From Amphiscolops sp. MND2022 (Eukaryota), in the NCBI GenBank assembly GCA_964187785.1, contig OZ076419.1, positions 39,122,001 to 39,186,000 of the forward strand: a DNA stretch of 64,000 nucleotides, read 5' to 3'. The notes beneath the pieces were generated by a model that had not been told where the DNA came from, did no database searches, and was given only the letters and a program-made list of their open reading frames with translations. Within the stretch, counting starts at the first letter, position 1. Every line of letters starts with the position of its first letter. Shown here piece by piece: positions 11,086 through 33,399 of this stretch. Position numbers and translations under genes: made by a program.

Positions 11086-11225
11086 AACTCTTTAAATAGA
11101 CCAAGTATAGATTTTCATACCAATAATTTAGGTTATTTCCTTCAATTTGAAAAATTGTAGAAGAGGCATCTGCCAGGGCAGATTTTTTTCGAACTCTGGA
11201 CATGGAACAAAGTAACCAATAACTC
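11086..11225 (+). repeat. Possible LTR 3' end plus primer-binding site
   Basis: ...gaactctggaCA followed directly by TGGaacaaagtaacc (11203), the CA|TGG arrangement of an LTR/PBS junction; matching tRNA not identified. Confidence 0.25.
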
Positions 11226-12195: not shown

Positions 12196-12399
12196 TTCCG
12201 CTGACCGGACTCGGCCTTATGCTAGTAGTTTTAGTAGTTTCGATTGTAAGAAAAGTGGCCCAATCAGAGTGAGATTGTAAACTGACGAAAAAAAAGAAAA
12301 AAAACTAGCCACTGTAAGAGTCGGGCACTTTTCTCTAGAAAAGCGCCGACTAAAAACAGTTCCCATAAGTGTCCAATGTTCAGCGAAAAGGCTACAGTT

Positions 12400-14400: not shown

Positions 14401-14981
14401 GTACAGGTGTTTTGTTGTTAGAACGATGTTCAAAAACTTTCTTACTTCCCGTCTTGCTAGGCCGTGCGTATCAACGTGCTCTTTGGAAATTACCCAAAAC
14501 GAAGAAAAGCTATCGGAACGTCTATCAGAAGAACTGTCACATAGATATTTTGTCTAGCATAATTTTGTTTTCCTGATTAGTTTTTAAAAACTTCCATAGA
14601 ATTTAATTCTATGTGTACTCTACGAAAAATGGCAAAAAAAGTACGAGAATACCAAGAAAATTTTAATCTTGAAGTCAGAGTTCGGAGAAGTTTGCTCGCT
14701 TGAGTAAGTTGATTTGTGACTGCATGGCGTAGTGATTCACTGCAAAAAAGGCCGCTTGTCTCTGTTTGACTTCATGTGCCATTCTTTTTTAGTTGGCGCT
14801 TTTCTTAAGAAAAGAGCCGGACTATTACAGTCACTCGTTTTTCTCCAAGACAGGCTCGAAGCGACGAACGTTAACGTTTTGTTCAGTTTTTCCAACTAAA
14901 GGAAACTAAACGAGTACCCGTTGCGGGAAGTTAACGCATCTAAGTACTTCCAAAGGGTTTCCCTTTGGTTTTTTTTACTAT

Positions 14982-15003
14982 CATTACAGTGCATCTGCAA
15001 GCT
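14982..15003 (+). repeat. Left terminal inverted repeat
   Basis: cattacagtgcatctgcaagct; TTTTCTG(T/A)GCGT also shared just inside both ends; subterminal TTGCGGAA/TTCGGAAT at about 15093, 15117 and 15162. Confidence 0.85.
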
Positions 15004-15539
15004 AAATCGCCACAGACACTTTTCTGTGCGTGTATGTCCTCCGATTCCGCAGACATGTCTTAAAGCGTGTAAAATTGGCAACTTAGCACTGATTTTGCGG
15101 AATCCACGCCACGAATTTTTCGGAATCCGTGGGCATGGGTTAATACGTTAGCTGGTTTCAAATTGCGGAAACTGGGACCAAAAAAATATGCCGACAAATG
15201 CCAACACGATGCCGCCAAATTCGTGTCTTGGATTCCACAAAGTGCATTACAACCAATCAGATGCCTGCAAATTTTAGCGTCTTAGTTTCCACTTACATTT
15301 AAATTAGCTGAAATCAAATTTATTAAGCCAGAGAGTAAATACAAAGTCAATTTACACAAACAAGTTACAATCAATGTCTCCCTTTCCGTAAAACTGTCGG
15401 CTTCTCTTCCTTTCATCTATACTATACTATACTACTATATTATGGTACTACAATTATACCAACTGCATTTGAATTTGAAAAAATGAAATTTGAAAATGAA
15501 TTTGAAAAAACGAAAAAGGAAAATTTCTTTCAACACTTT

Positions 15540-15966
15540 ACTATAGTGGAAAATATTTATACTGATTGTATATAGTGATATACATTAGTGAAATACATTC
15601 ATACCAGCTAGAATAAATTAAATTAAAAATAAAATTTTTAGTTTTAAAAAAAAGTGGAAATCGGGAGATTTTGGTTCCAATCGTGGATCGAATTGTGAAG
15701 TTGTTTAGATAAATAAAAATAAAAATTTGATTGAAATAGTCAATTAGAATGCAATTGAAAAGATTCAGGTTACGTGTACTATACTTAACTATAATGTTCA
15801 CTATACTACATCATATCGGAATATTTTTATACTACAGTGATACACAAGAGTGAAATACTACATTTATACTGGAATAATTTTTAATTTATACTGGAAAATT
15901 AAAAACTTATTTGAATAATTAAAGTGGAGAAACGGGGAGATTTTGGTTCCAATCGTGGGTCGAATC
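15540..15966 (+). repeat. Degenerate ~270-bp direct duplication
   Basis: Both units contain agtgatatac/agtgatacac, agtgaaatac and aaagtgga..gggagattttggttccaatcgtgg.tcgaat (15669 and 15941). Confidence 0.6.
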
Positions 15967-16282
15967 TGAGCAAAATTAATCAATATCTATTGGACGGTCA
16001 ATAAATTATTGCAAAAACTAATTTTTAGAAAGCTTTTCACTATGAATAATTTATTTATGAAGAATTTATGAAAATAATAAATAAAATAATTTATTAGTTA
16101 TGTAATATATACCTCAATTTATTTTTTAAACAAGTCTTACAATTATTTATTGGTTAGTTTTAGCAATAAAATTACCTATTGTATCGTATCAATAAATATA
16201 AATACAATATTGCGCACCCCTGATGATTGTTATTGCCTTATCGGTCATCGCTTGAAAGTTCACAGTTTCAACCGTGGCTTAC

Positions 16283-16446
16283 CAGCGTCGCGTATCAGCG
16301 GCTCGTATCAAAATCATAACTGTTACAATCGTGAGTATTTTCCTTGCTAATCAGCGGCGCGTAACAGCAACTCGTATCAAACATGACTGTTCCAACTTTG
16401 GGTGATTCCTATTGGCTAATCAGCGGCTCGTATCAGCGGCGCGTAT
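16283..16446 (+). promoter_or_regulatory. Three tandem pairs of a 13-mer CAGCGGC(T/G)CGTAT at 69-bp spacing, upstream of the ZnF-JmjC gene
   Basis: Pairs start at 16283, 16352 and 16421; about 210 bp upstream of the ATG at 16655. Confidence 0.55.
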
Positions 16447-16654
16447 CACGCATATCAACTGACCGACCGGCAGTTTTCATTGTCAACTTGTTTTCCTACC
16501 GTTCAGACTGTACTGTTAACTGACTCTCTCAATCTCATTAACAAGCCAAATCTTAGAATCTCTCATTAACAACTCAAAGTATAGCAGACACCCAACAGCC
16601 AGCAGCCGATAAAACCCTCAGCTAATCAACGGATATAACCCGGAGCCAATCATA

Positions 16655-19600
16655 ATGGTAAGTTGACTTATTCGTTTTCGGAAATAAATTTTTGGTTGAA
16701 AAAATGTCTATAAATTGATTTTGGTTATGGATTTTTTAAAGATTGGTTCCAAGCTTGGGCCAAATGGAATCCCCAAGAAGATCAGATCAAATAATATGAG
16801 AATGAAAACTTCAAAAACAAACTAGAAAGGTTTTGAATTCACAGAAAAAAAGTAGACACTTTTATGCCCAAAATCTTTCACAATCCAACAATTCTCTTGA
16901 TTTCTACTTGTTTCAATTTTAATCCCAAATTCCCAGGAACTGTTTTTGGATTTTATAAGGAAATTATCAGTTTAAAATCAACTGCCCCTTTGGGTCGTTA
17001 TAAAAGCACCGTTCTGTAATTGATTTTACAATTTAGAAACAGATTCTGGTTCAATGTTTAGGGCAGTTTTTTCTAACAGTGTCCTGATAACTTTCAAATT
17101 GTTTTACGCAGATTCTCTCCCAAAAAATGTTTGTTTAATGATATAATTTTATACTTGTTTAAAAGTTAATTTATGAAACTTTTGTTTAATAAATACTGGG
17201 GGACTTAAATCGATGGGGGGATGAACCGGAATACTTTTTTAAAAGTTAATTTATAAAACTTTTATTTAATAAATACTGGGGGATTTAAATCGATGGGGGG
17301 ATGAACCGGAATACTTTTTTAAAAGTTAATCTATAAAACTTTTGTTTAATAAATGCTGGGGGACTTAAATCGATGGGGGGATGAACCGGAAAGATCCAAA
17401 CTTTCTCGTAAACAATTTTGTCTTTGTTATTTGAACTAATATAAATTTCATGATATTTGCTCTTTTAGAACTCATATTTTCAAATTGTTACAGCCGAAAT
17501 CGAAGAAAACACCTGCAAGTACTTCTGAGCAAGCTGCCGGACCCAGCGGACCCAGCACTTCGCAGAATTTTAGATCCCGCAAGGACTCATCTGACTCATC
17601 ATCAGAACTGTTCCTTGGTAAGTTGTTAATTCCTGAGTTACTTTTTCTTGACTATCAGTGAAATAGGTCAAAAAAGTATCAAACTGCTGAAACGGGTAAC
17701 TTCAACTGCGAATGTGAAACATGTTTGAAGTTTTGATGAACGTTTCTTTACTTTGTTCTGGTTTTATTTGTATTGAAATTTTGAGGCTGTATGAACAGGG
17801 GTGTTCAAAAAAAGGCGTTTTTTATTCTTTAGAACAGATTTATTTATCTTCGTTTGCAGAATTGAAATATGCCATGGTAATTATGGTAAAAATTGGGGGC
17901 GTCTTTCAACTTTTTCCATTAACTCAGTACTTCGAATCCATTATTTGATTCCATTAATTGCCAATAATTTTCACGCAAATATGGCCCGAACACCCCTGTG
18001 TATGAGTCTTCATTTTTTGTATATATTTTCATCTTTGTTTTATTTATCAGGTCATCTCTGCACAATCGGTGCTTGCGACAATTATGCCCAAACTCGAGAA
18101 GCCCTTTCTGTTCATGCCCGCACTTGCCCTGGTTTGTCAGAAAACCAATAATGACAACTCTGCGACGAATTTCGAGATACGACTCCGCCACCTAAAAATT
18201 GTAAGACTTCCATTTACTCGTTCTTGTACTCGTTTTGACAATTCCAATTGACAAGCGACAATATCCTTTTTTGTAATTGAAAATGGATTGATAAAAAGTT
18301 TGACAAATCAAACATCACGTGGATCACTATATCATGTACACCATTTTTCAAAGTTTTGAGCAATCTAAATGAAACCTTTCAATTTTGTAACTCGTGGAAA
18401 ACGATCTGATTTTGGTATGTATTTTGTATGTATAGGTATGGTTTTTTATTTGAGTTCTTCATCTCGTATAATTCAAAAGGCTATGTTTAGGTTTCCCGTG
18501 TCCGAATTGCGACTACGTTGCTGGAAAAAAATGGCACTTAACCCGTCATCGTCCAGGATGCAAAAGTGTCAGCAAGCAGGAACAAGTTGCGCAGAATTTG
18601 ACGTGCGAGAAATGTGGTCAGATTTTCACGACCAAAAAAAGTAAAGAGCGCCATCAAAGGAAAGCCAAATACTGCACGAAACAACAAGAAAAGATTGCTG
18701 CTGGAGAAGAAGTCAGAATGTACCAATACCGTTAGTGTTCAGATTGTTTCCAGGATTTTGTTTGTTCATGTTTTGAAATATTTTACGGTCTTGAACCGAT
18801 TGTCGTATGCAATAGAAAAAAGAAGGAAAATGTTTTTCTGGTGTGAAAAGGAAGGTCTAAAAAACACAATTTTTCGGAAAGGATTTTGGTTCCAATCATG
18901 GGTCATACCATGAAAGCATTCATGAAATCTTTGGAAGATGTTTGGTTCCAACCATGGGTCATACTAAAATGGAAATTCATGAAAGAAAAGGTTTTGGAAA
19001 TTCATTTGAAAAAATGTCTTTGAAATTACAGAAGCTGCGAGAGGAAAAAGAAGAAGCCGTCACTTCTGCGTTTCGTGTGGGACCTCATTCGGGTACGGGT
19101 ACAGCCTGAGGAACCACATCGCGAGATCAGTCAAATGTCAAATTGCCCAACCACCGATGCCACTTGATTTGACATTCAATTCTGGGACTCCAGTGGCCCC
19201 ATTTGGCACCCAAGAGCACTTCGCATTCTGCGAAAACGTGCCTCTGGAATGTCGATTTTCCTACGCTGAGTGGCAGGGTCCCCATGACAATCAAACCGAA
19301 CACCTGGGTCATCTTCTTCGACATTGTGTCCCTTTGATTTGGAGAAATGGAGCCAAGCAGAGGACTGAAAGTCCTAAAAGTCTCCGCGAAAAAAGACTTC
19401 GTCGCGGAGATCAAACAGCTTCTGCGACCGGTCAACCTTGCTGAACCTGATGCTCCAATTGAAGTCAAGTCAGCCAGAATCGGAGAGGTAAAAACACTTT
19501 TTACTCGTTTGAACCATGTTTAGCATTTAGTAAAAAACAAATTTAGTTGTTCCAAAACACAAACCAATGGTATACCCCTTCAAGTGAGGTTCTGCAATGT

Positions 19601-21700
19601 ATTAGGATTTGTATTTGTTTTCACGCCATGTGTTTAAAGATATGGTCTTGTTTTCCGCATTGCATTCTTTGAGTAAGTCAATTCAAACTTAAAACCGTGG
19701 AAACTAGGACATTCATGGTAACGCGCAATAATGTGTATACCCCTTTGAGTGAAAGTTCGCTATGTATTAGGATTTGAATATGGTTTCCACGCCATGTTTT
19801 CAAAGATATAGTCTTGTTTTCCGCAATGCGTTCTTTGAGCAAGTCAAGTTATACTGAAAATCCGTGGAAACTGGGACAGTTATGTCGAGTTCGTTTTAGT
19901 ACCAATCCAGGGCCGATCTACCTGTGGTGACAAGTACACTGTTGATAACATGAATCAGAACCTTGCCTAGCATCATCATTTAATAGATGTTTTAACAGAC
20001 ACGAGAAATGACGTATGAAAAATTTTTCGGGGAGCTGGCCAACTGTCATCCAGGCAGTCGATATTACCCTTTAAACGTCATCGATGTCAGGACACTCCCC
20101 AAGGCCATATACACAGTACCCGAGATGGTGGCTGACAACTCCATCAACCATTTGGCCGACAGGGAGATCGGGAAGTCGAGAACTGAGCCTTACTCTTGTT
20201 CTACTTCCTATTATGTCCTGGTCACTCAAGATTCTGCGCACACGACGTGGCATCAGGATTTTTCTTCGACGTCTGTGTTTTACACAGTTCTAACTGGAGA
20301 GAAGATTTTCTTTTTAGTGAAACCGTCGAAGAAAAATGTCAGCATTTTTGAAAGATGGTCGAATGCTGAGAACAACACTACGTAAGTAACAAAACTTAAC
20401 TAGCACACCAACTTTATTGTCTTCAAGAACACTGTTCTATTTTCAAAAACAAACAACTATACTTTTTGACTATTATTTTTTGGTGATGGAAAACAACAAG
20501 CAAGCATTTAACATCTCTTTTCAAATAATTAAACTTTTCTTTTAGTTTTCTTCTATTAAAGTCAAAAAATTAGAAAAGCAACTTCGATGTACTTTCAGGC
20601 CAACATTCTTCGGGAACATCGACCAGCTGGAAGAGGGATGTTTGCGGTTGCATGTCACAGCTGGAGATGTTCTAGTCATGCCCGCAAACTTCCTCCACTT
20701 TGTTCTTACGAAAGGCAATGCCATTTCGTCGGGAACAAACTTCCTGGCGTTTGGGCACCTGCCCATGATAAGACACTCAATCATTGTTGAGTTCCCGAAA
20801 AGATCCGATGACAAGTTCCCTGATCTTCCAGAGATGTTGGTACTTCTGATGTACCGTATTGCCGAAAAGCTCTGCCCTCGACTCTGTCGACGCCTGGTGT
20901 CGATGTACAGCACAGTGCAATCAAAATACAATGAACACGCCGCCCGTGAAGTAAGATTGTTAAGCCTTCAGTCTTTGTTTGGTAACAAAACTTCAATTTT
21001 CCATTTTTCCATTTTCCATTTTCAATCATTTCCATTTTGGTTCCAATCGAGGGTCATTTTCTAGTTCGAAAACTTATGTTTATGAACAAGTCTTGCTTTT
21101 TTCAAGACTTCAAAACACATATTGGTCATTTTCTACATTCATGTCTGACTGATATACACGCAAGTAAAGCACAACTGAGTGAAATTTTGTGCTTCTACGT
21201 CAATAAGTTTATAATAAACAAGAACATTACCATAATAATTTCGTTTTTTTTTCAATTGAAGGTTTGCTCTCCAGGTTGAAAGTTTGATTTTTACGTTTTA
21301 CAGGTGCTACCCGATTTCAGTCCTGAAAGACTTCACATCGTATTGTGCAAAAAAAGCCTCAGTGACACTGCGTGAGCCACCAAGCAGCAGCCGCAATTAT
21401 TTGAGCGAGCATCCCGAAAAGAATACTGACCCCAGTAAGGCTCTTACTGTTCCAGAGCATGTGCCCATCGCTGTTGACCCCTACACGAAAGCGTACGAGG
21501 AAGTAATGACGACAACGGATTTACTAGAACTCGAATCAAGACCCGCAATGATGATTACCCATGTTAAAGGCAGGGGAAGAACTGTCTTGCCGGCAAAGAT
21601 GGTAGATCCATCTTTGCACCCGAAACGCTGTCCTCTTGTTGCTGCTATTACGGGAATACGCTCAATCCCCCTTGAACTAGATATTTTAGATTTAGATTAA
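16655..21700 (+). CDS. Multi-exon C2HC zinc-finger plus JmjC histone demethylase (KDM2/KDM7-like), with a few frameshifts
   Basis: ATG|gtaagt at 16655; exons with CTIGACDNYAQTREALSVHARTC (18051), CPNCDYVAGKKWHLTRHRPGC and CEKCGQIFTTKKSKERHQRKAKYC (18491), CVSCGTSFGYGYSLRNHIARSVKC (19032); JmjC TTWHQDFSSTSVFYTVLTGEKIFFLVKP spliced in frame (GT 20382, AG 20598) to GDVLVMPANFLHFVLT..SGTNFL; AATAAA near 21738. Confidence 0.85.
17161..17390 (+). repeat. 80-bp tandem repeat, ~2.9 copies, intronic
   Basis: Unit aaaagttaatttat.aaacttt..tttaataaatactgggggac/tttaaatcgatggggggatgaaccggaatactttttt starts at 17161, 17241 and 17321. Confidence 0.92.
19560..19915 (+). repeat. ~165-bp internal repeat array 1 (inside JmjC-gene intron 19488-19970)
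   Basis: Core tgtattaggatttg..tggtttccacgccatgtgtttaaagat..gtcttgttttccgcattgc..ccgtggaaact.ggaca; period 165 (19598 to 19763). Confidence 0.9.
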
Positions 21701-21944
21701 ACTGTAGATTCAGATTTAGATTTTCAGCATCATACAAATAAATGACAAAAAATTGCAAAGTACCTGACAACCTGTTTTATTCAGTGACGAGCGCAAGAAG
21801 TTTAATTTGAAAACGAAATGAAAAAAAACCTCAATTGTTCAAAACATGCCTTGAAACATTTGGACGTCTAATGCAATAAATTCCAAAAAAGAATAATAGG
21901 AGAAAAATCAGGAGTATACCTCATGAATGAATTTCCGCCAGGTA

Positions 21945-22235
21945 AAAACGCAATGGAAACCAGGACATTTATGGTAACGCACAATCATGTGTATACCCTT
22001 TTGGGAGAAAGTTCGCAATGAATGTATTAGGATTTGTATTTGGTTTCCACGCCACGTGTTTAAAGACATGATCTTGTTTTCCGCATTGCATTCTTTGAGT
22101 AAGTCAGTTCAAACTTAAAACCGTGGAAACTAGGACATTTGTGGTAATGCGCAATCAATTTCTGGAAACCAAGACAAACGAAAGTTCGCCGAAACAGCGC
22201 CCAATATTGTGTGCTTTTTGATACCAATCTATGAT
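21945..22235 (+). repeat. ~165-bp internal repeat array 2 (between the convergent JmjC and transposase 3' ends)
   Basis: Same core (ggtttccacgccacgtgtttaaagac near 22042; ccgtggaaactaggacatt near 22121). Confidence 0.88.
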
Positions 22236-22360
22236 AAGTAAAACACTTCCTTAGTTTCGTAGGATCATCACAATAAACCTAATGAAAATATTTATTTTTT
22301 GAAGAATTTGTTGAATAGTTTCAAGTTCGGGTAACATATGAATTAGAAGAGAACAGTAAA

Positions 22361-25300
22361 TCAAAACGAAAGTTGTTTAAAAATGCCATCACGGTATCTC
22401 TTGGGAGCGACAATCGCAGATACACCTTCACCCAGTGTTTTTCCACTGCATTGGTCCAAAAACAAAGGTCTTTTGTCGTTGACACGATTTTCAACAAGTT
22501 TGGATCCGGGCTGAAGAATGTATGGCTCCGGGTCAAACAGCCTTTTTTTCTCGTCAACTTCGTATACAAAATCGATGTTCAAGAATTTGAAGCCCCCAGC
22601 TGCGAACCGTTTCGCTATTTTGGAATATTATGATGGTTCATTTCCACCCTCCCGTGTTGCTGATGCCCCTCTTTTCCTTAGTTTCTTCATATCGTTAATT
22701 GCCTCTGTGGAACCGGTACCTAAGATTAGGTCTTTTTCGTCCTTGACGAGAACAAAACAATTGGGGAGCTGTGAAAGGGTGCTCATCAACACGTCAGCTT
22801 GTTCATTTTCTAGAATAGTTCTTCCCATATTGATAATCACTTGTTTCACCATGTCATGTGTTAGAGTATGTTTTTTCCAACTACCCAAGCGACCAAGCAG
22901 ACAAAATCCTAATCCACTTAAAAGATTTTCTGGACATCCAATGGCGATAGTTGTTACCGGTGGTTCTTTGCGGCAAATATCAAGGTACTCAGGTCCCGGA
23001 ACGTCAATGCCCATCACTTTTGTTGCACTATGAAGTATACTCATTACGCTGTTTGAGGTACTTTTCGAAACTGTCTGATAGTTCTTTCTGTTTCCAGTCA
23101 CAATATGGTCATCAAAGTAAACCTGTGTTGTTGCGTTTTGTTCAGGTTCCATGATAATCTTAGAAGTTGGTTCAGCGTCCGACCCTTTGTCTTCAAATTC
23201 AACTGCGAATCTTAAAAATTTGAAGAAAGAAAAAAACGACTCGAGGAATAGTGGATGCTTGTGATAAATCTTACCCCCTCCGCGCATTGTTTTCGTCTGG
23301 AAGCCACGATTAGCTTGGTGGTTCGATTTTTCAAGACCTTCACACAAATGATCAAATGGTCTTTTTATGTATCCACTCTCAACAAGTTGAGGAAACATCA
23401 GCATTTTCAATTTATAGGGTGTCAAACCAGCATGCCCGAAGATCAAGATATTGATTTGGTAATAAACTTCAGCCCAATTTTTGAACGTTTCACTGTTGAA
23501 TTCTTCTGCTCGCAGACATAAAACACATTGATTTAAACTCGATCGCAGGAGTTCGCAAGCATCAAAAGCAGATATGAATATGTCATTGGACCCTTTTTGC
23601 TTGAGGTTATCTTTATTGAAAAGTTTAGGAAACCAGTTTGTTAGGATATTAACGCAAGGGACATTTGCGTTTTCTTCACTGCCAACAATGATATCTTCGG
23701 GACCCCGAAAACCATCGTAAAAATCGCTAATTTTACCGTCCTTCACACCTGCAAGCTCCTCTTTATCAGCAATGACTGCTAGAGCACTACCACCTGCGAG
23801 GGATACTGCACCTACAGTACCGATACACGAACCACTTCTATGAGATATAATGAACTGAAAGTATAGTCTCTTCGCATCTCTTCTTGTCAAATTTTCTTCA
23901 AGCTGGCGAATTGCTACATCATGATTGGGATACTTTTCTCTGATAATTTTCTGTGCAATTCTTTGGAGGTCATTTTCAACACAACGGGTGGTCATATGCG
24001 TGGCATCAGGACAAACTGATTGTATATTTTCGTAGAAGACCAAGGAAGATTTTGGAAGATACTTTCTGAAGGGTATAATAACATCAGATCGTAGACCAGT
24101 TTCATGATGACATTTTGTTGGTGTGTAGTCAAGTTCTGTTACATAGAGTGGCATTTTCGATGGGCTAGCTGATTCATTTGTGATACCGAGCACCAATTTC
24201 ATTAAAAACGGCGAATCGCCACTGTATGTCAAAATAACTCCGCGTTTTGACAGTTCCTGGGTCTTCATAAATAGCCAACCAGACTCTTGAACTCCAGCTA
24301 TAGTTGGCCCAATGTTTTGCTCCATTGCGAACCTACTATCTTTACCCCTGTATGCAGCAAAACAGAATACTGCATCTGATGATTGACACTTTATTTTGTC
24401 GGTAAGGATCCGGAATGCAATTCGTGTTGTTTCGACACCTCCAATTTCACAACCATATCCCCAAATATCAACTCGTTGGCCACTGAGTTCTTTCGTTCCA
24501 AATGAGAAGTATGACACCGTCTCCACGCATTTTATGAGGTTGCAGCGAAAACCAGAGAAGGTTCTTTCTGGCTCACACATTGCTGTAAAGTAGGACTGAA
24601 TTTCGGATGACGACTTCTTGACCAATCGAATGCATGGGACTAAGTTGTATCCGAGTCCAACAATTGAAAGTCTTGTTCGAATAACTTTTATAACATCTTC
24701 CGTGTTACCCGTTTTCGTGACAAGAGATAAATGGTGCCTGAACTCATCAGTAGATCCTCTTTTTTTGAATAGACCTTCTACAATTTTTTTGACTAAGTTT
24801 GGTTCCTCTTTATTTGTGAATCGTTGATCGTTTCTCTTATTTGCAGAGCTTTTGATTTTTTTAATGAAACTGTTGAACCCAACTTCTGACATCAGATCTG
24901 TTCTAATTGGACCAGTTTGTTCATGTTTGACTTTTTTGGCGTCTGATATTTCTAGCTTTCTTTCTTTTGAGAGAGAATTGTCACTGACTTGACCTTCAGG
25001 GGCCGCATATTCAGGAGTCACATCTGCAGGTGTCGCAAGAGTGTCTTTCATGTAAGGATTGTGATATGGTATGACATCATTATTGAAAAACAAACTGACA
25101 AACTCTCTTCTGGCTGAGTTCCAAGGGAAGTCTTTAAATCCACGCAGTTGAAGTAGTTTTGCCAATTTTGCTGCTATAAATACAGGGGGGTTTTCTGGCC
25201 TTTAACAGCAATTCTCCGAAAGAATTCTTTTGGATTTAAATTTGTCTCCGTCAACATTTCCCCAACAAGTGTCTCGAACTTCCGAAATTTATTCGGTATT

Positions 25301-25398
25301 TCTTTTCCGGATATATCGTCAAAAAGTCGACAGTTAGCGAAGAGTTTCCCATTTTCCACTTCGATATTATTTCTTTCCAAAATTGACAGTGGAGTCAT
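22361..25398 (-). CDS. RAG1/Transib/Chapaev-like DDE transposase (~920+ aa), disrupted
   Basis: 845-aa ORF joined to the upstream 74-aa ORF by a 1-nt indel in a C6 run (25185-25190). RAG1-like motif order: RVDIWG[Y]GCEIGG (D1 position), AYRGKDS, LTYSGDSPFLMKLVLG (D2), CPDATHMTTRCVE, LTPYKLKMLMFP, CEGLEKSNH (E). Frameshifted tail at 22361-22582. Confidence 0.72.
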
Positions 25399-25819
25399 TT
25401 CTAAAGCTGGTTTTTAGGTTTATTGCAAAGTGAAATTGTATTGATTGTAGAACAGTTTTCAGACTGACAACCTTTCCATACAATAAAATGAAATGCAATT
25501 AGATACACAAACCCACAAGTAAAAAGAGTCCGGTTTTGAGTCTCTTCATTAAACTGATGAAGAACGGTTCAAAAAATTCGATAATTTGAGTTCATATCAC
25601 CCAAGGCCATTTTGTCAATAATCACAATAAGATGCAAAAGAGTCCTCCATTAAATCTTCTCACTCGTACTTAGAAGTTTTAACTTCTTAGGACTGTTTGT
25701 TTCTTCTTTGTAAAGTGTTATCTGCTTGAAAATACTCAAAAGGTGTTAAAAAAGAAAAACAAAAACTGTTTGAATTTTTTCTGAAAACCATGACTACACC
25801 CATTCGAATGAAACTGAGC

Positions 25820-26320
25820 AACGTATTAGTACTTGTGCTTGGTTTCCACGCCATGTGTTTAAAGATGTGTCCTTGTTTTCCGCAACGCTTTCTTTGAGCA
25901 AGTCAATTTTCACTTAAATACCGTGGAAACCAGGACATTTATGGTAAGGCGCAATCCGGAGTCTGCATACACACATACCCCTTCGAGTGAAAGTTCGCAA
26001 AGTATTAAGATTTGTATTTGGTTTCCACGCCATGTGTTTAAAGAGTTGGTCTTGTTTTCCGCATTGGATTCTTTAAGCAAGTCAAATTATACTGAAAATC
26101 CGTGGAAACCGAGACGAATAGAATTGAGCAATGCATTACGATTTGTGTTTGGATTTCATGCCACGTTTTTTAAGATGTGTCCTTGTTTTCCGCATTGCTT
26201 TTCGGCGCAAATCAAAGATGCTGAAAAAAAATGGAAAACACGACAAGTAAAATCCCGGAAATAGCTGAGATTGTATCATTTTTGGTACCAATCAGGGGTT
26301 AATCTATATGTGACAAATGC
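25820..26320 (+). repeat. ~165-bp internal repeat array 3 (upstream of the transposase)
   Basis: Cores near 25840, 26020 and 26148; followed by tttggtaccaatcaggggttaatcta. Confidence 0.88.
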
Positions 26321-26518
26321 CTTGTTGATCATATGCTTTCAGAATAAAGTATTTCGATAGTCTAAGACTTTTCTCATGAATTTTCAAGAATACAAGGTCA
26401 TGGAGCTCATATTGTAATAATTACTAACAATGATGAAAGATGAATTGTTGAACAAACAAAATATTATCAAACACGAATAGAAAAAGTTTTTTAAAATTTA
26501 GGTGTTTTTTAGAGTATT

Positions 26519-27929
26519 TCATGCATGTGAGACAGGTACATTCCGACTCAGATCTCTATTTTTGCTGTTTTTGTAGTGGCCTTGGCTCGTCAAAAACTGG
26601 AAACGAATCGTGAACATGCCAAATTCTCGATGTTCAGTGAACCTCATTGTCTTGATAAGAACATCTTCTCCATCGCTTGCGTGACATGGGATCATATTCC
26701 AATTTCTTCCAAGTACAGTATCCCATGTACCGTTGCACAACTTATGTCTCTCTTGGTTTGCAACACTATAATTAACGGCCTCTTTGAAATTGCCAGTTTC
26801 GAAGCCACAGAGTTTTTTTGTCATTGGGGTACAGGGAACTAATGTTGCGGTTAAGGAATGCTTCTTTCTTGAGAGTCCCGCCGTTCGTTTTATTGCAGAA
26901 AACAAAGCATAGGCTTGGTCCATTGGCTCCAGGAGCAAATTAAAATCCATTACATCGCCTTTAGAAGATGTTGTTGTGACAACACGAATTGTTGGGATGC
27001 GCACTTCAATGTCAGGGTCACTTCCGCTCTGCGTGAATGCACATGCTTTTCTCTTCTGAACATCATAGTAAACCTTCTGGATTTCAAAATCATCATTTGA
27101 GTAAGATGCAGTAGATCCCACCTGGAAATAAAATGATTGAACAAATATTAGGTGGGAAAAATACTTTGAAAAATTTGGTGCCAATCCAGGGTTATCAAAA
27201 TTCAAAACCAAAGTTTGTAAGAAAAAAGCAAGAAAACATTACCTTTATGATACCATTTTCACAGGGTGCGTATGTTAATGCAACGTCATCGTCAACATTG
27301 GGAAGCAAGGAAAGAATGTCGACTTGTGGCATCGGTTGTGTGGCGCTTGTCACACGGGCTTGCTTTTTGACGAATGGGCGATGTACGTCAGATCCTGATT
27401 CTTCATCTTGTTCAGTTTCATCAATTTCTGGTTCAGTGTCTCTTACACAAGGTTTATTTCTTAGTTGGCGATACAAAACATACTCATCATTGTCCTCCAC
27501 GTCGGTTATCAAACATTGTTGACAGAAAGGATCATTAATTTTTACCCAACCCATCACAACTGACCCGCAGCAACGGTCCTCTTGGCATCTTTCGCTATCT
27601 ACACAATTACATTCTGGTTGTCAAAAGTGAATTTGATCGTTTCTGACCAGTCGACGAGCGTTGTAGCTAAGTGGGGTTGACCGTCTTTTGTTGCTCACAG
27701 TTTCTTCGCGGACAAGATTGTGGGATTTTCTAATGTTCCAGTTATATTTTTCAGGTCTGTATACTTCGGGAACAGTGATATCTTCTTTTTTATTGTAAGA
27801 CCAATCGACCCATTTAATTCTTACACACCAATCGCTCACAAAGGAAATTCTTTTCGCTGATTCCCAAATTGATGTCGCAGGATCCAAGATTTGCACAACT
27901 TCATTTTCATAGAAGGTTTGGAGAAGCAT
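26519..27929 (-). CDS. Two-exon gene: N-terminal Tudor-like barrel, Cys-rich segment, unknown C-terminal domain (one internal stop)
   Basis: FYENEVVQILDPATSIWESAKRISFVSDWCVRIKWVDWS; in-frame TGA at 27621-27623, then CNCVDSERCQEDRCC..DPFCQQC; GT-AG intron 27122-27242 in phase 0 joins ENGIIK to VGSTASY of the 230-aa ORF. Confidence 0.6.
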
Positions 27930-28309
27930 TTTTATTTTAAAGCTCGAAACTAATAGAATGTGTAGACAACTTATGTGGTGAAAGTTGATGGGATGAGCGT
28001 TAACGAAGACGATAACGAGATTGGTTGCAATCCAAATTAATTACAGCTAATCGTCACCTAATTACCGAGCAGTTGCACTAATAAGAATAATTGCAAATTG
28101 AAGACACTAGCCTCGTTCCGAAAAAACGCTTTTTACATGCCTCATTTAAGATTGAGGTTTTTGGTTGCACAGCCGGATATGGCACTACAAGTTACCAAAT
28201 ATCAGATATTATCGTAATTCATATCAACAAATATTCGAAATATACAATCATTATCTTGAAATCGTCTCTGAAAATCAGACCGTCAAAATAGAAAATCGAA
28301 CTTTTATAA

Positions 28310-31011
28310 ATGGAACAAAACCAAACCTCGCTGCATTTGACGATGCCCCCAATTCCAACACCGGTTTCCGCGGACATGTCTACGCCTCTGACGTTAACCC
28401 AAATGCAAACTCCTTCTGGTTTGTTCACGCCCATGGTATCGCCCGTGATGTTTAGCCAAACATCCGGCGGGCAACTCAACAGCACTCCGTTCCGCCTCCA
28501 AGAGCCACCTGAATTCAGCTTCAATGAGGATGGAATAATAACGGAACAACTCCCGACTGAAGCTGAAGAGGTCATAAACGAGTTTTTAAACATTCAGAGC
28601 GAATTACCAGCTGAGATTATAATTCCTCCAAAACAGTTGAATGGACATGCAAGCTCCGATAATGTAGTAAGCAAACGTCCAATGCCCCCACCAGTTGATA
28701 TGGTAAGTGTAGTAAAACTTCTGAAAAGATATTGTTCAAATTTTGCGTTCGAAACATGGGTTACGTTTCCTAGAAACCAATGTACTTTTTAATTGCTGGA
28801 GGATGCGTTATCAGTTTTAAAGATAATAGGGACACTTTTTGAAAACTCTCCCTTTTTTAGACTGTTCCCGCCAAGAAGAAGAAGCCTGATTACAAAACGG
28901 ATACAGTGGAGTCCTTCATTAAAAGGACAAAAACAGAGAATGTATCGCGTTGCAGAAAGAGCACTCTGGCTACGAAAAAGGTCCAAATAGAGTTCTTTCG
29001 AAGTCTACTGGCGTACGTTCTAATTTTCTCGGGTTTTCTGGATCGGGAGGTCAGCAATGTGACTGTCCAAGCCGTGGCGCAGGCAGCAGTTCAGATGAAA
29101 GAATCCGACGACAAAAATTCCTCTTTCGGGCTTGAGATAAATGTAGCGGAGAGGTGCGCCAGAAAAACGTGCTACAATATCCCACGATGGTTATTGGAAG
29201 GCTTTGTGGACTACTTCGTGTTCGAAACGAGTTTCTGGACCACAGTGAGGGAACTCTTTTCGAAAGACTGCTGAGTGACACAGACAATCGGATCCTGTAC
29301 ACCGAATTGTTTTTTTGTGAACTCAGCTGGGAAATCCAACTTCCGACCTAGCCACGTTGTTGACCAATATATGGAGTCGGTATGTAAAAACAAATCATCA
29401 TCACACCCCCTTGAATAAAACAATTAGTAAGGATTTGTGTTCGGTTTTCACGCCATGTGTTCAAAGATATGGTCTTTTTTCCTCGAAGACTTTTAAAAGC
29501 GAGCCATTTTATACTCAAAAACCGTGCAAACTAGGACATTCATGGTAACGCACAATCATGTGTATACCCTTTACAGTGAAAGATCGCAATGTATTAAGAT
29601 TTGTATTTGGTTTCCACGCCATGTGTTTAAAGATATGGTCTTGTTTTCCGCATTGCAATCTTCGAGTAAGTCAATTCAAACCTAAAACCGTGGAAACTAG
29701 GACATTCATGGTAACGCGCAAAAATGTGTATACTCCTTTGAGTGAAAGTTCGCAATGTATTAAGATTTGTATCTGGTTTCCACGCCATGTGTTTAAAGAT
29801 ATGGTCTTGTTTTCCGCATTGCATTCTTTGAGCAAGTCGAATTATACTGAAAATTCGTGGAAACTGGGTCAATTTATAATGTAGAGCTAGTTTTTGGTAC
29901 CAATCGGGGGTCGATCTATAAGTGACAAGTACACTGTTGGTATCATTATTTCAGAATGCATATAGACACTATTCAATGTTTGCATCATTTCAAACAGGTA
30001 CTGAAACACTGTGATAGCCCGCTGTGGGAATTGGAACGGCACCTTCATGTTGTGTTGCCCATCGCAAACGACACTGAAGCAGTACTCCCTAAGTTGAAGG
30101 TCCAAACTAGAGCAATTTGGGCGACTCTGGACATTGCCTTGGACTACCAGGTCGTGCAGTCGGCAGTGAGAAGGCACCAGGATCGACAGAAATATGCCCG
30201 CCAATCAGCTCGTGCCCATGCTTTTTTCAAGCATATGAATGGGCAAACTGACCTTGCTTCGTTGGAAATGAGACTGAAGAGCTATTTCCAGCGACAGAAA
30301 TGGACGACGCAGAATGACGGCAAACAAGACCTGAGAAAAACTTATCTACTTGTGCTCCCAATGTTTATTACCCCAAAAGTAGAAACGAACATAGCAATTC
30401 AGAAGATTTATTACAAAGGATTGGCAAGCAATATGGAGTTTGAAGATCAAACTTTGCTTATGGAGAGATGTCGATCTCATAAATGGCCCGGAATCACGCA
30501 GGTTTTTAGCCAGTTTGGAAGAGGAATCATTGCCACCCGAGTTTTCCAGAAAAATGAAGTCGTCATTGATTACCACGGGCAGGTTTTCCTCAAGACATCA
30601 ATGGACGAAGTATCCGCCATTGAAGGTGTTAAACGGGAGTTTTGTCTGGAAGTCAAAGGACCTGGCCGAAGCATAATCAATGCCTCCGCGGAAACGTTTC
30701 CTGTCCACCCTGATAGTAGATGTGTGGGTCGCCTTGCCAATCACTCAGTTTTGGAAGCCAACATGAAGTCCACTGATGTCATTGTGTTTGCCGACAACAA
30801 TCAACGTTATGTTGACCTCCGTGCATGTAAAACAATCCATCCCTTCGAACAGTTAATGTTCGACTACGGGGATCCGATAGCTCGCTCTGAGTTTATTGAA
30901 TCACAGTCAGGAAGCAGCTCTGGAAACACCAGCGGTCGCTTCAGCGGTAGTCAAGAACCACGAAAAGAATACAGTGACAATCTTGCAGATGAATCGGAAG
31001 AGGAAAATTGA
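28310..31011 (+). CDS. SET-domain lysine methyltransferase (SETD8/PR-Set7-like) with long disrupted N-terminal region
   Basis: SET motifs GRGIIATRVFQKNEVVIDYHG (30514), GRLANHS (~30727), QLMFDYGD (30862); upstream ORF pieces 28310-29420 are separated from it by a repeat-filled GT-AG intron (~29427-29954). Confidence 0.85.
29420..29940 (+). repeat. ~165-bp internal repeat array 4 (inside SET-gene intron)
   Basis: Cores near 29443, 29609 and 29775; followed by tttttggtaccaatcggggggtcgatcta..gtgacaagtacactgttg, as in array 1. Confidence 0.9.
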
Positions 31012-32154
31012 AGAAACGAACTTTCATTCACAAACTTTTAGACTTTTGTGGCATTGGCTCTATTGTGCGTGATTGTTTAAAATGGTGTTACTCAGTTTCA
31101 ACTGGAACCTTATTGAGATTAGAGTGCTGACGAAAGCTTGAACTTGACTTTAAACCATTTCAAATTCGATTTTGGAACACTTGCAACGCTATTCAAAAAA
31201 TTATGTTTGATTTGAAGAAGTCAATTTTTTTGTAATCCTAAATCACATTTGAGTGCAACAATTGTTTCAATAAACTTCACACCAAACGTTACATCGGAAG
31301 CCCGTTGATAATTAGAGTTTAAAAAAACGTACTTCGAAAAAATACAAAATGTACAAAGTTTACAAATGAAAAATAAAAACGCAACTGTTATTGAGGTTTT
31401 GGGAAAAAAAGTAAAATTTTTGGTTCCAATCGTGGGTCGAGTTCTGATGCTTCAATTCATAAATAACAAAATCAATCGAAAAATTTGCGTTTTTGAATTT
31501 GATTTAATATAGCGAGTCTTCTCAGACATTCTCAGACAGGATGAACTGTCAGACAGAAAAAAGGGATTCAGTAGCGCAGTGGATCTTCAATTAGGCCCTC
31601 CAAAGTCTTTTACCGGATCGATCTGGTGGAAGACAGAGTTGTCTGTATAGAATCGCCCTGCAGAGTGTTTTGATGGGGATCGATCCGGTGACAGACTACG
31701 CCTCAAGCTTCACTACTCGCCTTATCAACTGCGCCACCATCTCCGTTATGCCGTTGCATAGAACACATCTATAAACTTTTGTTTGATGAACTTGATCATG
31801 AACCACTGGGTCGTCATCAAAATGGCAGATAGAATGCAAGTGAAGAGATTTTGGTTCCAATTGTGGGTCGAATCGTCATAATTCAATTGTTTAGTAGAGT
31901 TGAACTTCGGAATAGATTACTTTCAGAATAACGTAAATCTCGTAGTTACGTAATCGTTTGTCGTGACCTATCAAAAATAGTATTCTATCAACGTGATAAT
32001 TATTCAAGGCAGCATGAAGGACTGCATAAAATCGCACAACGAGCCCGGGTTGTTGAGAATGCGCATTAAAGCGCATTATCGAGCGAATATACTGCTCTAT
32101 TTGACGCAGCGAAAGCATTTAGTTTATTAGCAAATAGATATCGTTCAAAAAGAA

Positions 32155-32227
32155 GACCCGTTGGCCAAATAGGATGCGCGCTAGCTTTCCGATCGTGAGC
32201 TCGTGGGTTCAGATCCCGCTAACGGCA
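32155..32227 (+). ncRNA. tRNA-like sequence (pseudo-tRNA or SINE head)
   Basis: A-box-like TGGCCAAATAGG, T-arm GTGGG-TTCAGAT-CCCGC, partial acceptor pairing CCGTTG/TAACGG; anticodon stem poor. Confidence 0.45.
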
Positions 32228-33193
32228 ATTATTTAGAAATGAGAGATTAATTTTTTTCTATTTTTACCATTGCTTGTATTACAAATAGCCTTGAAAAAAT
32301 GCAAAAAAAATCGCCGGTTTGATACCGTTTGGTAATTTGATTAATTAATTATTGTTCTTTTCCAACCAACGCTTAATTTTGAGATCTTCCTGAGCATTAT
32401 AGCCTCTATTGAATAAAGAATTGACACCTTTGTTTCCAACCGAACTTTAGATACCGAAATCTACAGTCTTATTATATTAGAAAAGAATTAGAAAAAACGC
32501 TTACGGATCTTTTCTGTTAATTCCCCCCACCTACGTTTTCCACTTCAGTTAGGCGGTCGAGAAAAAATATCATTGAATTGATAGTAACAATCAATCAAAT
32601 AGCAGTATTTTATAATTCTACTTCATCGCTGATAGTGGTGGGGTTATAAAATTTCTGCGCATACTGCGGGGGGAAGGGTTTGCGGGAGATTTAATGGAAA
32701 AGACCATCTTAATAAAAAAGCTTACTTTTCTACCAATTGTAATTGAAAAAAATGAAAACTTTAATGAAATAATTGGTTTGAAACTTGGAGATTTTTCGGT
32801 TCCAATTGTGGGCCAAATCATGAAGCTTCATTTAACAGAAGTTTGTTTCCAAGCATTATCATTTGTAGCAATTTTCATCTGATTTCAAAAGATGAAATGC
32901 GGAAACATATTATAATTGTTCCGGAATGTAGGTGTACGAATTACTCTACTGAATAAAATTCTGGAATCTGAGACACGTTGCACTATTTGCTTTCTACATA
33001 ATTGGCGCTATTAAGGCCTGGCATAAGTGGCAATTAATTGGCCCCATTAACTTGCGAAGACACAAAATTGCGGAAAGTAAGATTTCAACTTCAAAGCAAG
33101 CTAAGGCAGTCGACATCAAAGGGGAATGAATTCAGTGCGGGCGTCTCGGTTTCCGAGATTTTGTGTCCTGATTTCCGCAAAACGCTCAGAAAA

Positions 33194-33215
33194 AGCTTGC
33201 AGATGCACTGTAATG
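33194..33215 (-). repeat. Right terminal inverted repeat
   Basis: agcttgcagatgcactgtaatg is the exact reverse complement of the left TIR; subterminal TTGCGGAAA at about 33067 (+) and 33172 (-). Confidence 0.85.
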
Positions 33216-33217
33216 GT

Positions 33218-33367
33218 CTAAACGTAACCTACAAAACCGGACCGGACTAAAGGTTCCCCCTTTTGATTTTTTTTTCGGCACTGTGTGACATTTCTCGAAA
33301 GTTTTGTTGGTCTCCAAAGCGTCCCCCTTTTAGTTTTTTACTATTTAAACGCAGCCTACTAAACCGG
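33218..33367 (-). repeat. Modular GGGGGACCC repeat family copy, interrupted by the 18.2-kb element (remainder at 14945-14981)
   Basis: aaagggtttccctttggttttttttactat (14952-14981) plus ctaaacgtaacctacaaaaccgg (33218) matches the adjacent intact unit aaagcgtcccccttttagttttttactatttaaacgcagcctactaaaccgg (33316-33367). Confidence 0.75.
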
Positions 33368-33399
33368 ATGATGGAAGTTGAGTTTTCAGATGATTTGTT

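Follow-up and report, generated by a model that had tools for sequence, protein, structure and literature searches.

A family of terminal inverted repeat transposons joining a RAG1-fold transposase to SET, zinc-finger–JmjC and fourth conserved genes

The 18.2 kb segment at positions 14982–33215 of the window (the whole 64,000-nucleotide stretch of DNA that was analysed) is a real but defective copy of a transposon bounded by terminal inverted repeats (TIRs). The explanation that we regard as probable is that it represents a decayed member of a cut-and-paste, autonomous-type class II TIR family in which four genes are inherited together, namely those for a transposase, a SET-domain methyltransferase, a C2H2 zinc-finger and JmjC protein (ZnF–JmjC) and a fourth conserved protein, and in which the preferred mechanism is chromatin control that the element directs at itself.

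Ends, repeats, copies and selection

An earlier note on this DNA had described a perfect 22 bp TIR pair around four genes, with element-specific repeats stopping at the TIRs, and both observations held. The two TIRs are perfectly complementary, four genes lie between them, and the pair is unique in the window, with two matches in 64 kb at up to three mismatches and none in 100 shuffles (no chance matches expected). The ends and the internal repeats are as follows.

14982–15003, + strand: left TIR, 22 bp, 5'-CATTACAGTGCATCTGCAAGCT; the same end bounds L003, L004, L005, L007 and L008
33194–33215, − strand: right TIR, 22 bp, perfect reverse complement of the left TIR
15004–15200, + strand: left subterminal region, with short TTGCGGAAW / TCCACGCCACG motifs at 15095, 15118 and 15163
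33060–33193, − strand: right subterminal region, with TTGCGGAAA motifs at 33068 and 33172
15670–32814, + strand: dispersed 20-nt motif TTTGGTTCCAATCRTGGGTY, 10–12 occurrences, all on the + strand, with starts at 15670, 15942, 16742, 18885, 18941, 21036, 26281, 27174, 29893, 31419, 31850 and 32795
19566–19884, 21954–22155, 25785–26345 and 29405–29957, + strand: four arrays of a ~166 bp internal repeat
17151–17391, + strand: three tandem copies of an 80 bp unit, inside the element

All copies begin and end with CATTAC...GTAATG, that is, with the 5'-CA...TG-3' termini of the CMCT group of transposons. The terminus reads CATTAC[A/T]GTG, so that a sequence resembling the RSS heptamer, TACAGTG, occupies TIR positions 4–10, displaced from the tip; a TIR starting with the heptamer-like CACAGTG was not found. 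Positions 14–16 of the TIR vary by subfamily, yet they agree between both ends of each element. The subterminal motifs are candidate transposase-binding sites, and the TCCACGCCAYG core of those on the left reappears within the ~166 bp internal repeats.

The 20-nt motif is absent from the remaining 45.8 kb of the window, and the ~166 bp repeat is confined within the window to its four arrays inside the element. Related copies hold 9–15 of the 20-nt motifs each, the exceptions being L002 (five) and L006 (none), no flank has any, and the motif is kept where the remaining non-coding DNA has ceased to align between copies. The core of the ~166 bp repeat, GGTTTCCACGCCATG...TTTTCCGCA, has been kept in the divergent lineage L002 as well, and aligned blocks suggest that the copy number of the 80 bp unit differs in other copies of the element.

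No target-site duplication was found in any of the five complete copies (window, L004, L005, L007 and L008), the sole flank match of at least 2 bp among them being a 2 bp 'aa' at L007. For a DDE transposase the lack of a duplication is unusual; Transib and RAG give 5 bp. When the two flanks of the window copy were joined, they aligned without a break to a pair of paralogous repeat units, which form a quasi-empty site; about two bases are unmatched at the junction and none is duplicated, at just 76–78% identity, so that small differences at the junction may be ordinary divergence.

The proposal of a multicopy, TIR-bounded family carrying its cargo along was borne out by four further complete copies (L004, 18,054 bp; L005, 18,321 bp; L007, 17,696 bp; L008, 13,111 bp) and two partial ones, with the same genes and the same ends. 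The complete copies terminate at the same TIR and have unrelated flanks, the partial copy L003 shows one TIR end, and L008 derives from another sample than the remaining complete copies. Among transposase clusters at a minimum of 90% identity, that of P0001 has 128 members and that of P0004 has 72, the contigs of those listed differing in length. Gene order is identical in L001, L003–L005, L007 and L008. All four genes are present in a different order in L006, the transposase of which is 38% identical, and the SET gene, the fourth gene and the transposase are present in L002 (transposase 53% identical) and L009 (~26% identical). The identities of all genes drop in step from lineage to lineage.

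Between subfamilies, dN/dS was 0.06–0.18 wherever dS, which is near saturation, could be estimated; for L008 against L007 or L003, pN was 0.11–0.20 in five of six segments and 0.33 in one ZnF segment, with pS of 0.55–0.80. It could be argued that the SET, JmjC and fourth genes are recent host passengers, or that the locus arose by segmental duplication of a host gene cluster, with no role in a transposon life cycle: DNA transposons are known to capture host fragments, dN/dS is relaxed (0.15–0.85) within the youngest subfamily and broken copies are numerous. However, the strong purifying selection between subfamilies speaks against passengers, as do the occurrence of the same genes, in rearranged order, beside transposases that are 38% and ~26% identical and the exact stop of the copies at the TIRs within unrelated flanks. 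Furthermore, the proteins returned by searches with the SET and fourth genes were unnamed ones in ENA metagenome assemblies and Logan assemblies, several belonging to multi-member clusters, and no named or annotated cellular homologue was among the matches. Neither single-copy host genes as cargo nor other TIR pairs devoid of it were found. The host-passenger reading is largely refuted and highly improbable, and the three genes are genes of the element that are under selection.

Fold and domains of the transposase

The transposase gene of the window is a defective copy with the following parts.

22364–25413, − strand: transposase gene (N-terminal segment 25177–25413, main open reading frame 22631–25201, tail 22364–22627)
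22652–22924, − strand: BRCT-like C-terminal region (approximate, placed by homology only)

The main open reading frame has 857 codons; the gene has a frameshift from a 1 nt deletion near 25191 and a premature TAA stop at 22628–22630, ahead of the C-terminal tail. Many copies are broken, the window copy among them. Judging from longer relatives, the intact protein probably has about 1,000–1,100 residues. Relatives comprise 24 close homologues and 506 representative clusters, and none of these clusters is named or in Pfam.

The earlier description of this protein as RAG1/Transib-like stands with regard to its fold. In the AlphaFold (AF2) model (pLDDT 84.1, pTM 0.84), the fold of the catalytic core is that of RAG1/Transib: the top 48 Foldseek matches against the PDB were all RAG1, BbRAGL or HzTransib (probability 0.99–1.00), the best being 6oes_A (E 5.6e-6 over ~630 columns) and the next after these 48 being Hermes (E 0.013), with modest TM-scores of 0.28–0.54. 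The acidic positions conserved across the family are D245, D249, D329, D399, E409, E621 and E624 in the numbering of the open reading frame. Near-invariant among them are D249 (33 of 35 relatives, with Tyr in the window copy), D399 (56 of 57) and E621/E624 (57 of 57). A putative catalytic triad was assigned by motif resemblance and conservation; as a lead only, we take the motifs WGDG, PDxxH and ExxExxNH to resemble the surroundings of RAG1 D600, D708 and E962.

It is nevertheless quite improbable that the element belongs to canonical Transib or to the RAG-like transposons of the ProtoRAG type. Strong structural matches are limited to RAG1, BbRAGL and HzTransib, and the 5'-CA...TG-3' termini and the heptamer-like sequence within the TIR would suit such an identity. 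However, the 5 bp duplication is missing and the heptamer-like sequence lies inward of the terminus; Pfam RAG1 gave no match at E ≤ 10 in 66 family members, no PDB sequence was matched by phmmer or by profiles of 20 and 66 sequences, and no RAG2-like gene was seen. A conserved C(2)C zinc motif was not found either, the CVLC of the window having its first Cys in 37 of 62 sequences and its second in 5 of 61, and a stretch that resembles the H(4)H region of RAG1 by eye has a conserved Lys (53 and 56 of 57–58) and not His. Membership of Transib proper was therefore not supported. Relative to RAG1, ProtoRAG (BbRAGL) and Transib, the likeness lies in the fold of the catalytic core over ~620–640 columns, the termini and the short TIRs, whereas the transposase is 10–13% identical with no detectable link at the sequence level, and the element further differs in its BRCT region, in its three accessory chromatin-type genes and in its size of 13–18 kb.

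[quoted passage not shown] Large multi-gene elements and epigenetic enzymes aboard them (TET/JBP) both have precedents in the group (PMC12730594). Compared with this group by description only, the element shares a RAG1-related transposase and CA...TG termini, but lacks a target-site duplication and conservation of the C(2)C and H(3–4)H motifs. Because, of the CMCT superfamilies, the matched solved structures include only RAG1 and Transib, the fold cannot distinguish between Transib and the superfamilies that are its sisters.

From profile matches, a BRCT domain was assigned to the C-terminal part of the transposase family; like the defects of the window copy, it is not in the earlier note. Of 66 family members, 23 match BRCT_2 (best 1.6e-6) and ten match BRCT (best 1.2e-7), and in four distant members the matches fall at equivalent C-terminal positions; the window copy itself has no significant Pfam match. 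The model has a beta–alpha repeat in this region, and the best PDB profile match, which is weak, is the BRCT domain of DNA ligase IV.

The SET, ZnF–JmjC and fourth genes

The three genes that accompany the transposase are listed below.

28310–31008, + strand: SET-domain methyltransferase gene (segments 28310–28789, 28861–29271 and 29956–31008; SET domain at ~30517–30870)
18472–21697, + strand: C2H2 zinc-finger and JmjC gene (KDM7/PHF8-like)
18472–18732, 19010–19441, 19996–20382, 20546–20970 and 21260–21697, + strand: approximate coding segments of the ZnF–JmjC gene
26522–27929, − strand: fourth conserved gene, earlier called Tudor-like, a pseudogene in the window

The SET gene adjoins the transposase in all of the loci fetched (L001–L009) and matches Pfam SET over its full length (1–105, 3.1e-10). 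Its best solved relative is SETD8/KMT5A (E 2.4e-5), in agreement with the earlier note; the similarity is distant, and the catalytic motifs are common to both, RLANHS and FDYGD being aligned. FDYGD stands in both sequences when the SET domain is aligned to 3f9w, which we take to be the Y334F mutant, wild-type SETD8 presumably having Tyr at this position.

The KDM7-type assignment of the ZnF–JmjC gene was likewise upheld. The exon at 19996–20382 has PHF8 (1.1e-11), KDM7A (1.6e-10) and PHF2 (5.4e-10) as its best solved relatives, and the iron-binding and cofactor motifs are common to the element and this family: WHQDF lies opposite FHIDF (the HxD iron ligands) in the alignment to PHF8 149–204, and LHFVLT of the second JmjC exon (20546–~20970) lies opposite IHAVLT of ceKDM7, which includes the downstream His. 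Pfam gave nothing for the JmjC region beyond a sub-threshold Cupin_8. KDM7 proteins carry a PHD finger, a reader of H3K4me3, where the element gene has C2H2 fingers; no N-terminal PHD finger was matched in the ZnF–JmjC gene, and the upstream exons hold C2H2 fingers instead (18472–18732, Pfam zf-C2H2, 4.4e-6). The segments of the gene recur in identical order in L001 and L003–L008.

The fourth gene, when intact, is a single open reading frame of 424 residues, for example in L008 (P0054); in the window it is broken by a stop at 27621–27623 and a change of frame around 27198–27238. The earlier identification as a Tudor-type reader found no support: no Tudor, Agenet, chromo or MBT-type family matched nine members at E ≤ 10, and neither Pfam as a whole nor the PDB, searched with the family profile, gave a match at E ≤ 10. 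A 452-residue open reading frame beside the ~26% identical transposase has the C-terminal domain in common with it (hhalign probability 93.6%).

Proposed chromatin control and comparison with known systems

In the mechanism that we prefer, the transposase would recognize the 22 bp TIR together with the subterminal and internal TCCACGCCAYG and TTGCGGAAW motifs, and would excise the element by DDE chemistry, by analogy with RAG1 and Transib. The zinc fingers may bring the demethylase to TTTGGTTCCAATCRTGGGTY, with its 9–15 sites per element in non-coding DNA, and the JmjC domain at these sites could then strip repressive lysine methylation, which by analogy with KDM7 might be H3K9me1/2, H3K27me2 or H4K20me1. 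For the SET and fourth proteins, the role would be to place or interpret a second mark. It is inferred which substrates the enzymes act on, which DNA the fingers bind and that the outcome is anti-silencing. Pairing the fingers with the 20-nt motif is conjecture; the motif might be of use to the transposase, or to something else, instead.

An unlikely alternative keeps the same transposon, but has the accessory module handle DNA breaks rather than counter silencing. The KMT5A-like SET protein would methylate H4K20 where transposition breaks the DNA, and the BRCT domain and the fourth protein would engage host end-joining factors; excised elements ligated into breaks would lack target-site duplications. 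This is consistent with the five of five complete copies without a duplication, the ~2 unmatched junction bases relative to the paralogous units, the BRCT domain with its weak ligase IV match and the closeness of the SET gene to KMT5A. In addition, 53BP1 reads H4K20 methylation during end joining, and the SET–transposase fusion SETMAR/Metnase promotes end joining. However, the quasi-empty site is divergent enough that its junction differences may be ordinary, and a zinc-finger demethylase with a dispersed cis motif better fits chromatin control directed at a locus. An unlikely and more far-reaching proposal is that the element founds a new superfamily-level lineage with the RAG1 fold that makes no staggered cut, its transposition being tied to host end joining through the BRCT domain and a self-encoded lysine-methylation module of SET writer, JmjC eraser and fourth protein; it would then be akin to the V(D)J recombinase, but work by 'cut-and-ligate' and bring a chromatin toolkit of its own.

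Self-directed chromatin control, the preferred reading, has partial parallels. SETMAR/Metnase is a fusion with a mariner transposase that was domesticated by a primate host; it resembles the element in functionally joining a SET methyltransferase to a DDE transposase and in its proposed link to end joining, whereas the SET gene of the element is separate and belongs to a multicopy family that bears the marks of earlier mobility. VANC acts on short motifs of the element that encodes it, and the dispersed TTTGGTTCCAATCRTGGGTY resembles that arrangement. According to PMC12730594, SET genes in HarbingerS and Phytophthora MuDR, TET/JBP in fungal DNA transposons and VANC in VANDAL likewise represent accessory genes that act on epigenetic marks and are maintained by their elements. 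The present element instead joins three accessory genes (SET, ZnF–JmjC and the fourth gene) to a BRCT-bearing transposase with the RAG1 fold. No paper on a JmjC demethylase, or on this set of genes, in a transposon turned up in the literature search.

If the preferred reading is true, a natural mobile element keeps a histone methyltransferase and a histone demethylase beside its transposase, under selection over deep divergence. The manner in which transposons fight or exploit host chromatin silencing would thereby become testable, with both the likely DNA-targeting part (the zinc fingers) and the candidate target sites (the conserved 20-nt motif) defined. Furthermore, the transposase would widen the diversity of the RAG1 fold through its BRCT fusion, the lack of detectable sequence similarity to RAG1 and Transib and the apparent lack of a target-site duplication, and would bear on the evolution of the V(D)J recombinase lineage and on the hand-over of broken ends to repair pathways.

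Termini, genes and copies of the element

The two terminal inverted repeats (TIRs) of the element are exact reverse complements of each other, as had been claimed in the earlier note. When up to three mismatches were allowed, the sequence occurred only twice in the 64-kb window, at the two element ends, and none of 100 dinucleotide-preserving shuffles contained any match, which bears out the perfect 22-bp pair. The coding segments between the TIRs fall into four sets, and the features are as follows.

14982-15003: left TIR, CATTACAGTGCATCTGCAAGCT, exact reverse complement of 33194-33215
18472-18732, + strand: C2H2 zinc fingers (Pfam zf-C2H2, 4.4e-6), followed by JmjC exons
19996-20382, + strand: JmjC exon (PHF8 1.1e-11, KDM7A 1.6e-10, PHF2 5.4e-10)
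22631-25201, - strand: transposase open frame, 857 codons
26522-27929, - strand: fourth gene
28310-31008, + strand: SET gene (Pfam SET, 3.1e-10; best solved relative SETD8/KMT5A, 2.4e-5)

The JmjC exon after 19996-20382 matches the C. elegans KDM7 homologue, and both iron-ligand positions, HxD and the distal His, are present in the alignments. The NHS and FDYGD motifs line up when the SET gene is aligned with SETD8/KMT5A. Gene calls in the fetched loci were made without intron models. A run of N occupies 10886-11085 of the window.

The transposase open frame has 24 close homologues, all from metagenome-type assemblies. Among clusters of transposases at 90% identity, one holds 128 distinct sequences and another 72, and the cluster members listed sit on contigs of differing size. 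Four loci from ENA assembly ERZ25074608 (L001, L003, L004 and L005) match window 14982-33215 in collinear order, with 88-94% identity; both TIRs are present in L004 (18,054 bp) and L005 (18,321 bp), and one in L003. Gene content and gene order are also unchanged in two further complete elements, L007 (17.7 kb, transposase ~70% identical) and L008, from a different sample (ERZ1742291; 13.1 kb, transposase ~69% identical). Homology among the copies ends exactly at the TIRs, beyond which the flanks differ and are unrelated from copy to copy. Furthermore, TIR positions 14-16 vary among subfamilies, yet are matched between both ends of each element, as would be the behaviour of functional ends. The proposal of a cargo-carrying, TIR-bounded transposon family is thus upheld by additional complete copies with the same genes, the same ends and unrelated flanks. 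As a separate observation, a ~2.9-kb tandem duplication at 3521-12416 of L001 places two transposase genes in a row (6477-8678 and 9331-11526).

A scan of JGI metagenomes with the TIR pattern, in which roughly one exact match was expected by chance according to our estimate, returned a single exact match on a 1.8-kb contig with 52% GC (L010, Ga0307404_10030939). The match lies at 32-53, and a looser TIR-like string is found 1.7 kb away (~1707-1727) in the same orientation; a 543-aa ORF on this contig matched no protein of the family. The match could be due to chance or could be a distant element end, and the CGGAAAC / CGCTCAG context adjoining it could indicate that such an end is genuine.

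Transposase fold and insertion site

Searches of Pfam and the PDB gave no sequence match for the transposase, whether the query was the ORF alone, any of six long relatives or a profile built from 20 or 66 sequences. A HMMER scan of 1.84 billion representatives returned 506 clusters with E<=1e-3, and the family is therefore large and unannotated. A first AlphaFold2 model built from a shallow alignment (pLDDT 45) gave only hints of RAG1/Transib in Foldseek, all with E > 0.3. It was superseded by a model of residues 165-857 of the window ORF based on the 66-sequence transposase alignment (A3), with a mean pLDDT of 84.1 and a pTM of 0.84. The top 48 Foldseek matches of this model in the PDB were mouse and zebrafish RAG1, amphioxus BbRAGL (6b40_A) and Helicoverpa Transib (6pqx_A and others), each with a probability of 0.99-1.00 and with E down to 5.6e-6; the alignments spanned ~620-640 columns, with a maximum target-normalised TM of 0.54. 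The hit after these was Hermes (hAT), with E 0.013. The description of the transposase as RAG1/Transib-like therefore stands at the level of fold, but not at the level of sequence.

Near-invariant Asp or Glu residues of the family are located at ORF positions 245, 249, 329, 399, 409, 621 and 624. WGDG, PDxxH and ExxExxNH look, by eye, similar to the surroundings of RAG1 D600, D708 and E962, to which they may correspond. BRCT_2 was matched in 23 of the 66 family members (best 1.6e-6) and BRCT in ten (best 1.2e-7); a C-terminal BRCT domain is thus a feature of the transposase family.

The C(2)C and H(3-4)H motifs are common to EnSpm, Mirage, Chapaev, Transib and RAG1 (PMC12730594). In contrast to this CMCT group, which has C(2)C, the present transposase family is without a conserved C(2)C. 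The string TACAGTG recalls the heptamer of the recombination signal sequence (RSS), but here it starts at TIR position 4, away from the tip. Because the matched solved structures are those of RAG1 and Transib only, the fold match is compatible with a position of the family either inside or outside Transib, and the family is treated here as a distinct RAG1-fold lineage.

Target-site duplications were searched for at lengths of 1-10 bp, both at the element ends and with the ends moved inward, and none of 2-10 bp was found in any of the five complete copies. Joining the two flanks of the window copy gives a sequence that matches, over the junction, two paralogues of a local repeat unit (12027-12188, reverse strand, and 33313-33368), an approximate 'empty site'. 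These units have ACTAT-T-TAAACG where the occupied site has ACTAT[element]GTC-TAAACG, so that the junction shows about two unmatched bases and no duplicated ones. Another reading, in which TA is duplicated at a CATTAATG target much as in the ESTA lineage of PMC12730594, was considered less likely: CATTA/TAATG is invariant at 12 of 12 ends sampled, including those of the 53%-identity lineage, and, judged by the two empty-like paralogues, eight extra bases would be needed. As the leading alternative to the self-targeted chromatin module proposed below, the accessory genes, together with the BRCT domain, might handle the DNA breaks of transposition through H4K20 methylation and recruitment of end joining. 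Such a role would also account for the missing duplications, and SETMAR (PMC2847698) gives a precedent linking a SET-transposase to end joining; it is nonetheless judged unlikely.

The 18.2-kb element is surrounded by repeat-rich DNA. It is inserted in a local repeat whose units are short and diverged and contain AAAGGGTCCCCCTTTT-like blocks (11900-12360, 14850-14981 and 33216-33400). A full-length U5 spliceosomal snRNA gene lies at 35010-35121 on the - strand (Rfam RF00020, 77.2 bits, E 2.1e-11). It is overlapped by an 87-nt repeat with 92% identical copies (34593-34679 and 34994-35080), which recurs ~400 bp upstream and may mark a second, partial U5 copy there. Direct repeats of at least ~1.4 kb at 36673-38093 and 43380-44790, 93-96% identical and with a spacing of ~6.7 kb, resemble retroelement LTRs. 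Between them, at 38-44 kb, the AT skew is strong (0.23-0.38), and the two longest ORFs of this interior gave no Pfam match. Gene fragments of Ty3/gypsy-type retrotransposons are present at 55000-63000 (- strand) and 1470-1994 (+ strand), as follows.

62105-62896, - strand: zinc knuckle and a weak aspartyl-protease match
60004-61269, - strand: reverse transcriptase (RT) and RNase H
59032-59739, - strand: integrase core
1470-1994, + strand: separate RT-RNase H fragment

Co-inheritance, selection and decay of the genes

Used as queries for homologues, the transposase, the fourth gene and the SET gene matched only unnamed proteins, from ENA metagenome and Logan assemblies and one JGI copy, and no named cellular proteins were among the matches of the latter two genes. 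All four genes are present in a different order in L006, the transposase of which is 38% identical. L002, with a 53% identical transposase, keeps the head-to-head arrangement of the fourth gene and the SET gene, the pair being turned round with respect to the transposase, and no JmjC gene was found up to a TIR-like end. In L009, a Logan contig with a ~26% identical transposase, the SET gene adjoins the transposase divergently, and the fourth gene has its C-terminal domain in common with a 452-aa ORF there (hhalign probability 93.6%, E 2e-7). This contig ends in ...CTGTCATTAATG after three CAC[T/G]TAGCAGAA repeats (10400-10457), the other element end lying off the contig, which hints that the TAATG-3' terminus may be conserved very deeply. 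The amino-acid identities of all of the genes drop together, lineage by lineage.

Between subfamilies, pN is 0.11-0.20 in five of six segments (SET, fourth gene, transposase and two JmjC exons) and 0.20-0.33 in the zinc-finger exon, compared with a pS of 0.55-0.80. The corresponding dN/dS is 0.06-0.18 where dS could be estimated; with dS near saturation and only aligned blocks used, these values are soft, whereas the contrast between pN and pS is clear and points to a cargo that is ancient and under selection. Inside the youngest subfamily dN/dS is 0.15-0.85, as expected for copies that decay after insertion. The cargo could alternatively consist of passenger genes, or the locus could be a segmental duplication; both are essentially excluded, as the copies end at TIRs with unrelated flanks and the cargo is ancient and selected. 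Given copies with unrelated flanks, co-inheritance and selection, the cargo does not behave as single-copy, syntenic host genes, and other TIR pairs do enclose it.

The fourth gene was described in the earlier note as Tudor-like and a probable reader. It is a single intact ORF of 424 aa in L008 (P0054) and has 11 homologues, all unannotated; nine members matched no Pfam family and the family profile matched no PDB entry, even at E<=10, so that the assignment as a reader is unsupported. The fourth protein is conserved and selected. At the 5' end of this gene, an 80-bp unit adjoins the divergent promoter region shared with the SET gene (window 27931-28010); it is present once in the window and L003, twice in L005 (7497-7577) and three times in L001 (3359-3519) and L004 (6420-6580).

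The transposase of L003 is intact, with an ORF of 939 aa (P0036), and that of the window copy is defective in three places: one nucleotide is missing near 25191, a TAA stands at 22628-22630 where L003 has Gln, and residue 249 is Tyr, a position held by Asp in 33 of 35 relatives. Past the TAA, the frame stays open as far as 22364, and this stretch corresponds to the tail conserved in longer relatives. In the fourth gene, a stop at 27621-27623 and a change of frame around 27198-27238 break a frame that is open in L008, and the SET and JmjC segments are still open. The window copy is predicted to be no longer able to mobilise itself.

Internal repeats and proposed function

Two repeats were confined to the element, in agreement with the element-specific repeats reported previously. 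The first, a 20-nt motif, TTTGGTTCCAATCRTGGGTY, has ten copies at <=2 mismatches and 12 at <=4 (0 expected by chance), all on the + strand and within 15670-32814. It occurs 9-15 times per copy in the three nearer subfamilies and five times in L002; none was found in L006 and none that was convincing in L009. It is absent from all flanks, nearly always has one orientation per element and persists where the adjacent non-coding DNA cannot be aligned between subfamilies. The second, a ~166-bp repeat, forms four arrays in the element interior only. Its conserved core, GGTTTCCACGCCATG...TTTTCCGCA, is also kept in L002 and echoes the TIR-adjacent subterminal motifs TCCACGCCACG and TTGCGGAAW. We infer that the transposase may use one of these motif classes, and the zinc-finger demethylase the other. 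The core of the 20-nt motif, GGTTCCAATC, resembles the pol III B-box, GGTTCGANNCC; a B-box role was unsupported, with no ARAGORN tRNA in the window and no tRNA-like Rfam match on the element (E<=1).

Epigenetic cargo in transposons is already known: SET genes are carried by HarbingerS and Phytophthora MuDR elements, TET/JBP genes by fungal DNA transposons and VANC by VANDAL (PMC12730594). No description of a JmjC-carrying transposon, of this three-gene set or of a BRCT-bearing RAG1-like transposase was found in the full-text literature, a search that did not cover Repbase.

Beyond the identities of the domains, the functions proposed here are inferences. Most probably, a RAG1-fold DDE enzyme drives cut-and-paste transposition of the element, which would bear its own chromatin module, targeted to itself. 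The zinc fingers would bring the KDM7-type demethylase to the dispersed 20-nt motif, where repressive lysine methylation would be removed, and the KMT5A-like SET protein and the fourth protein may add or interpret another mark.
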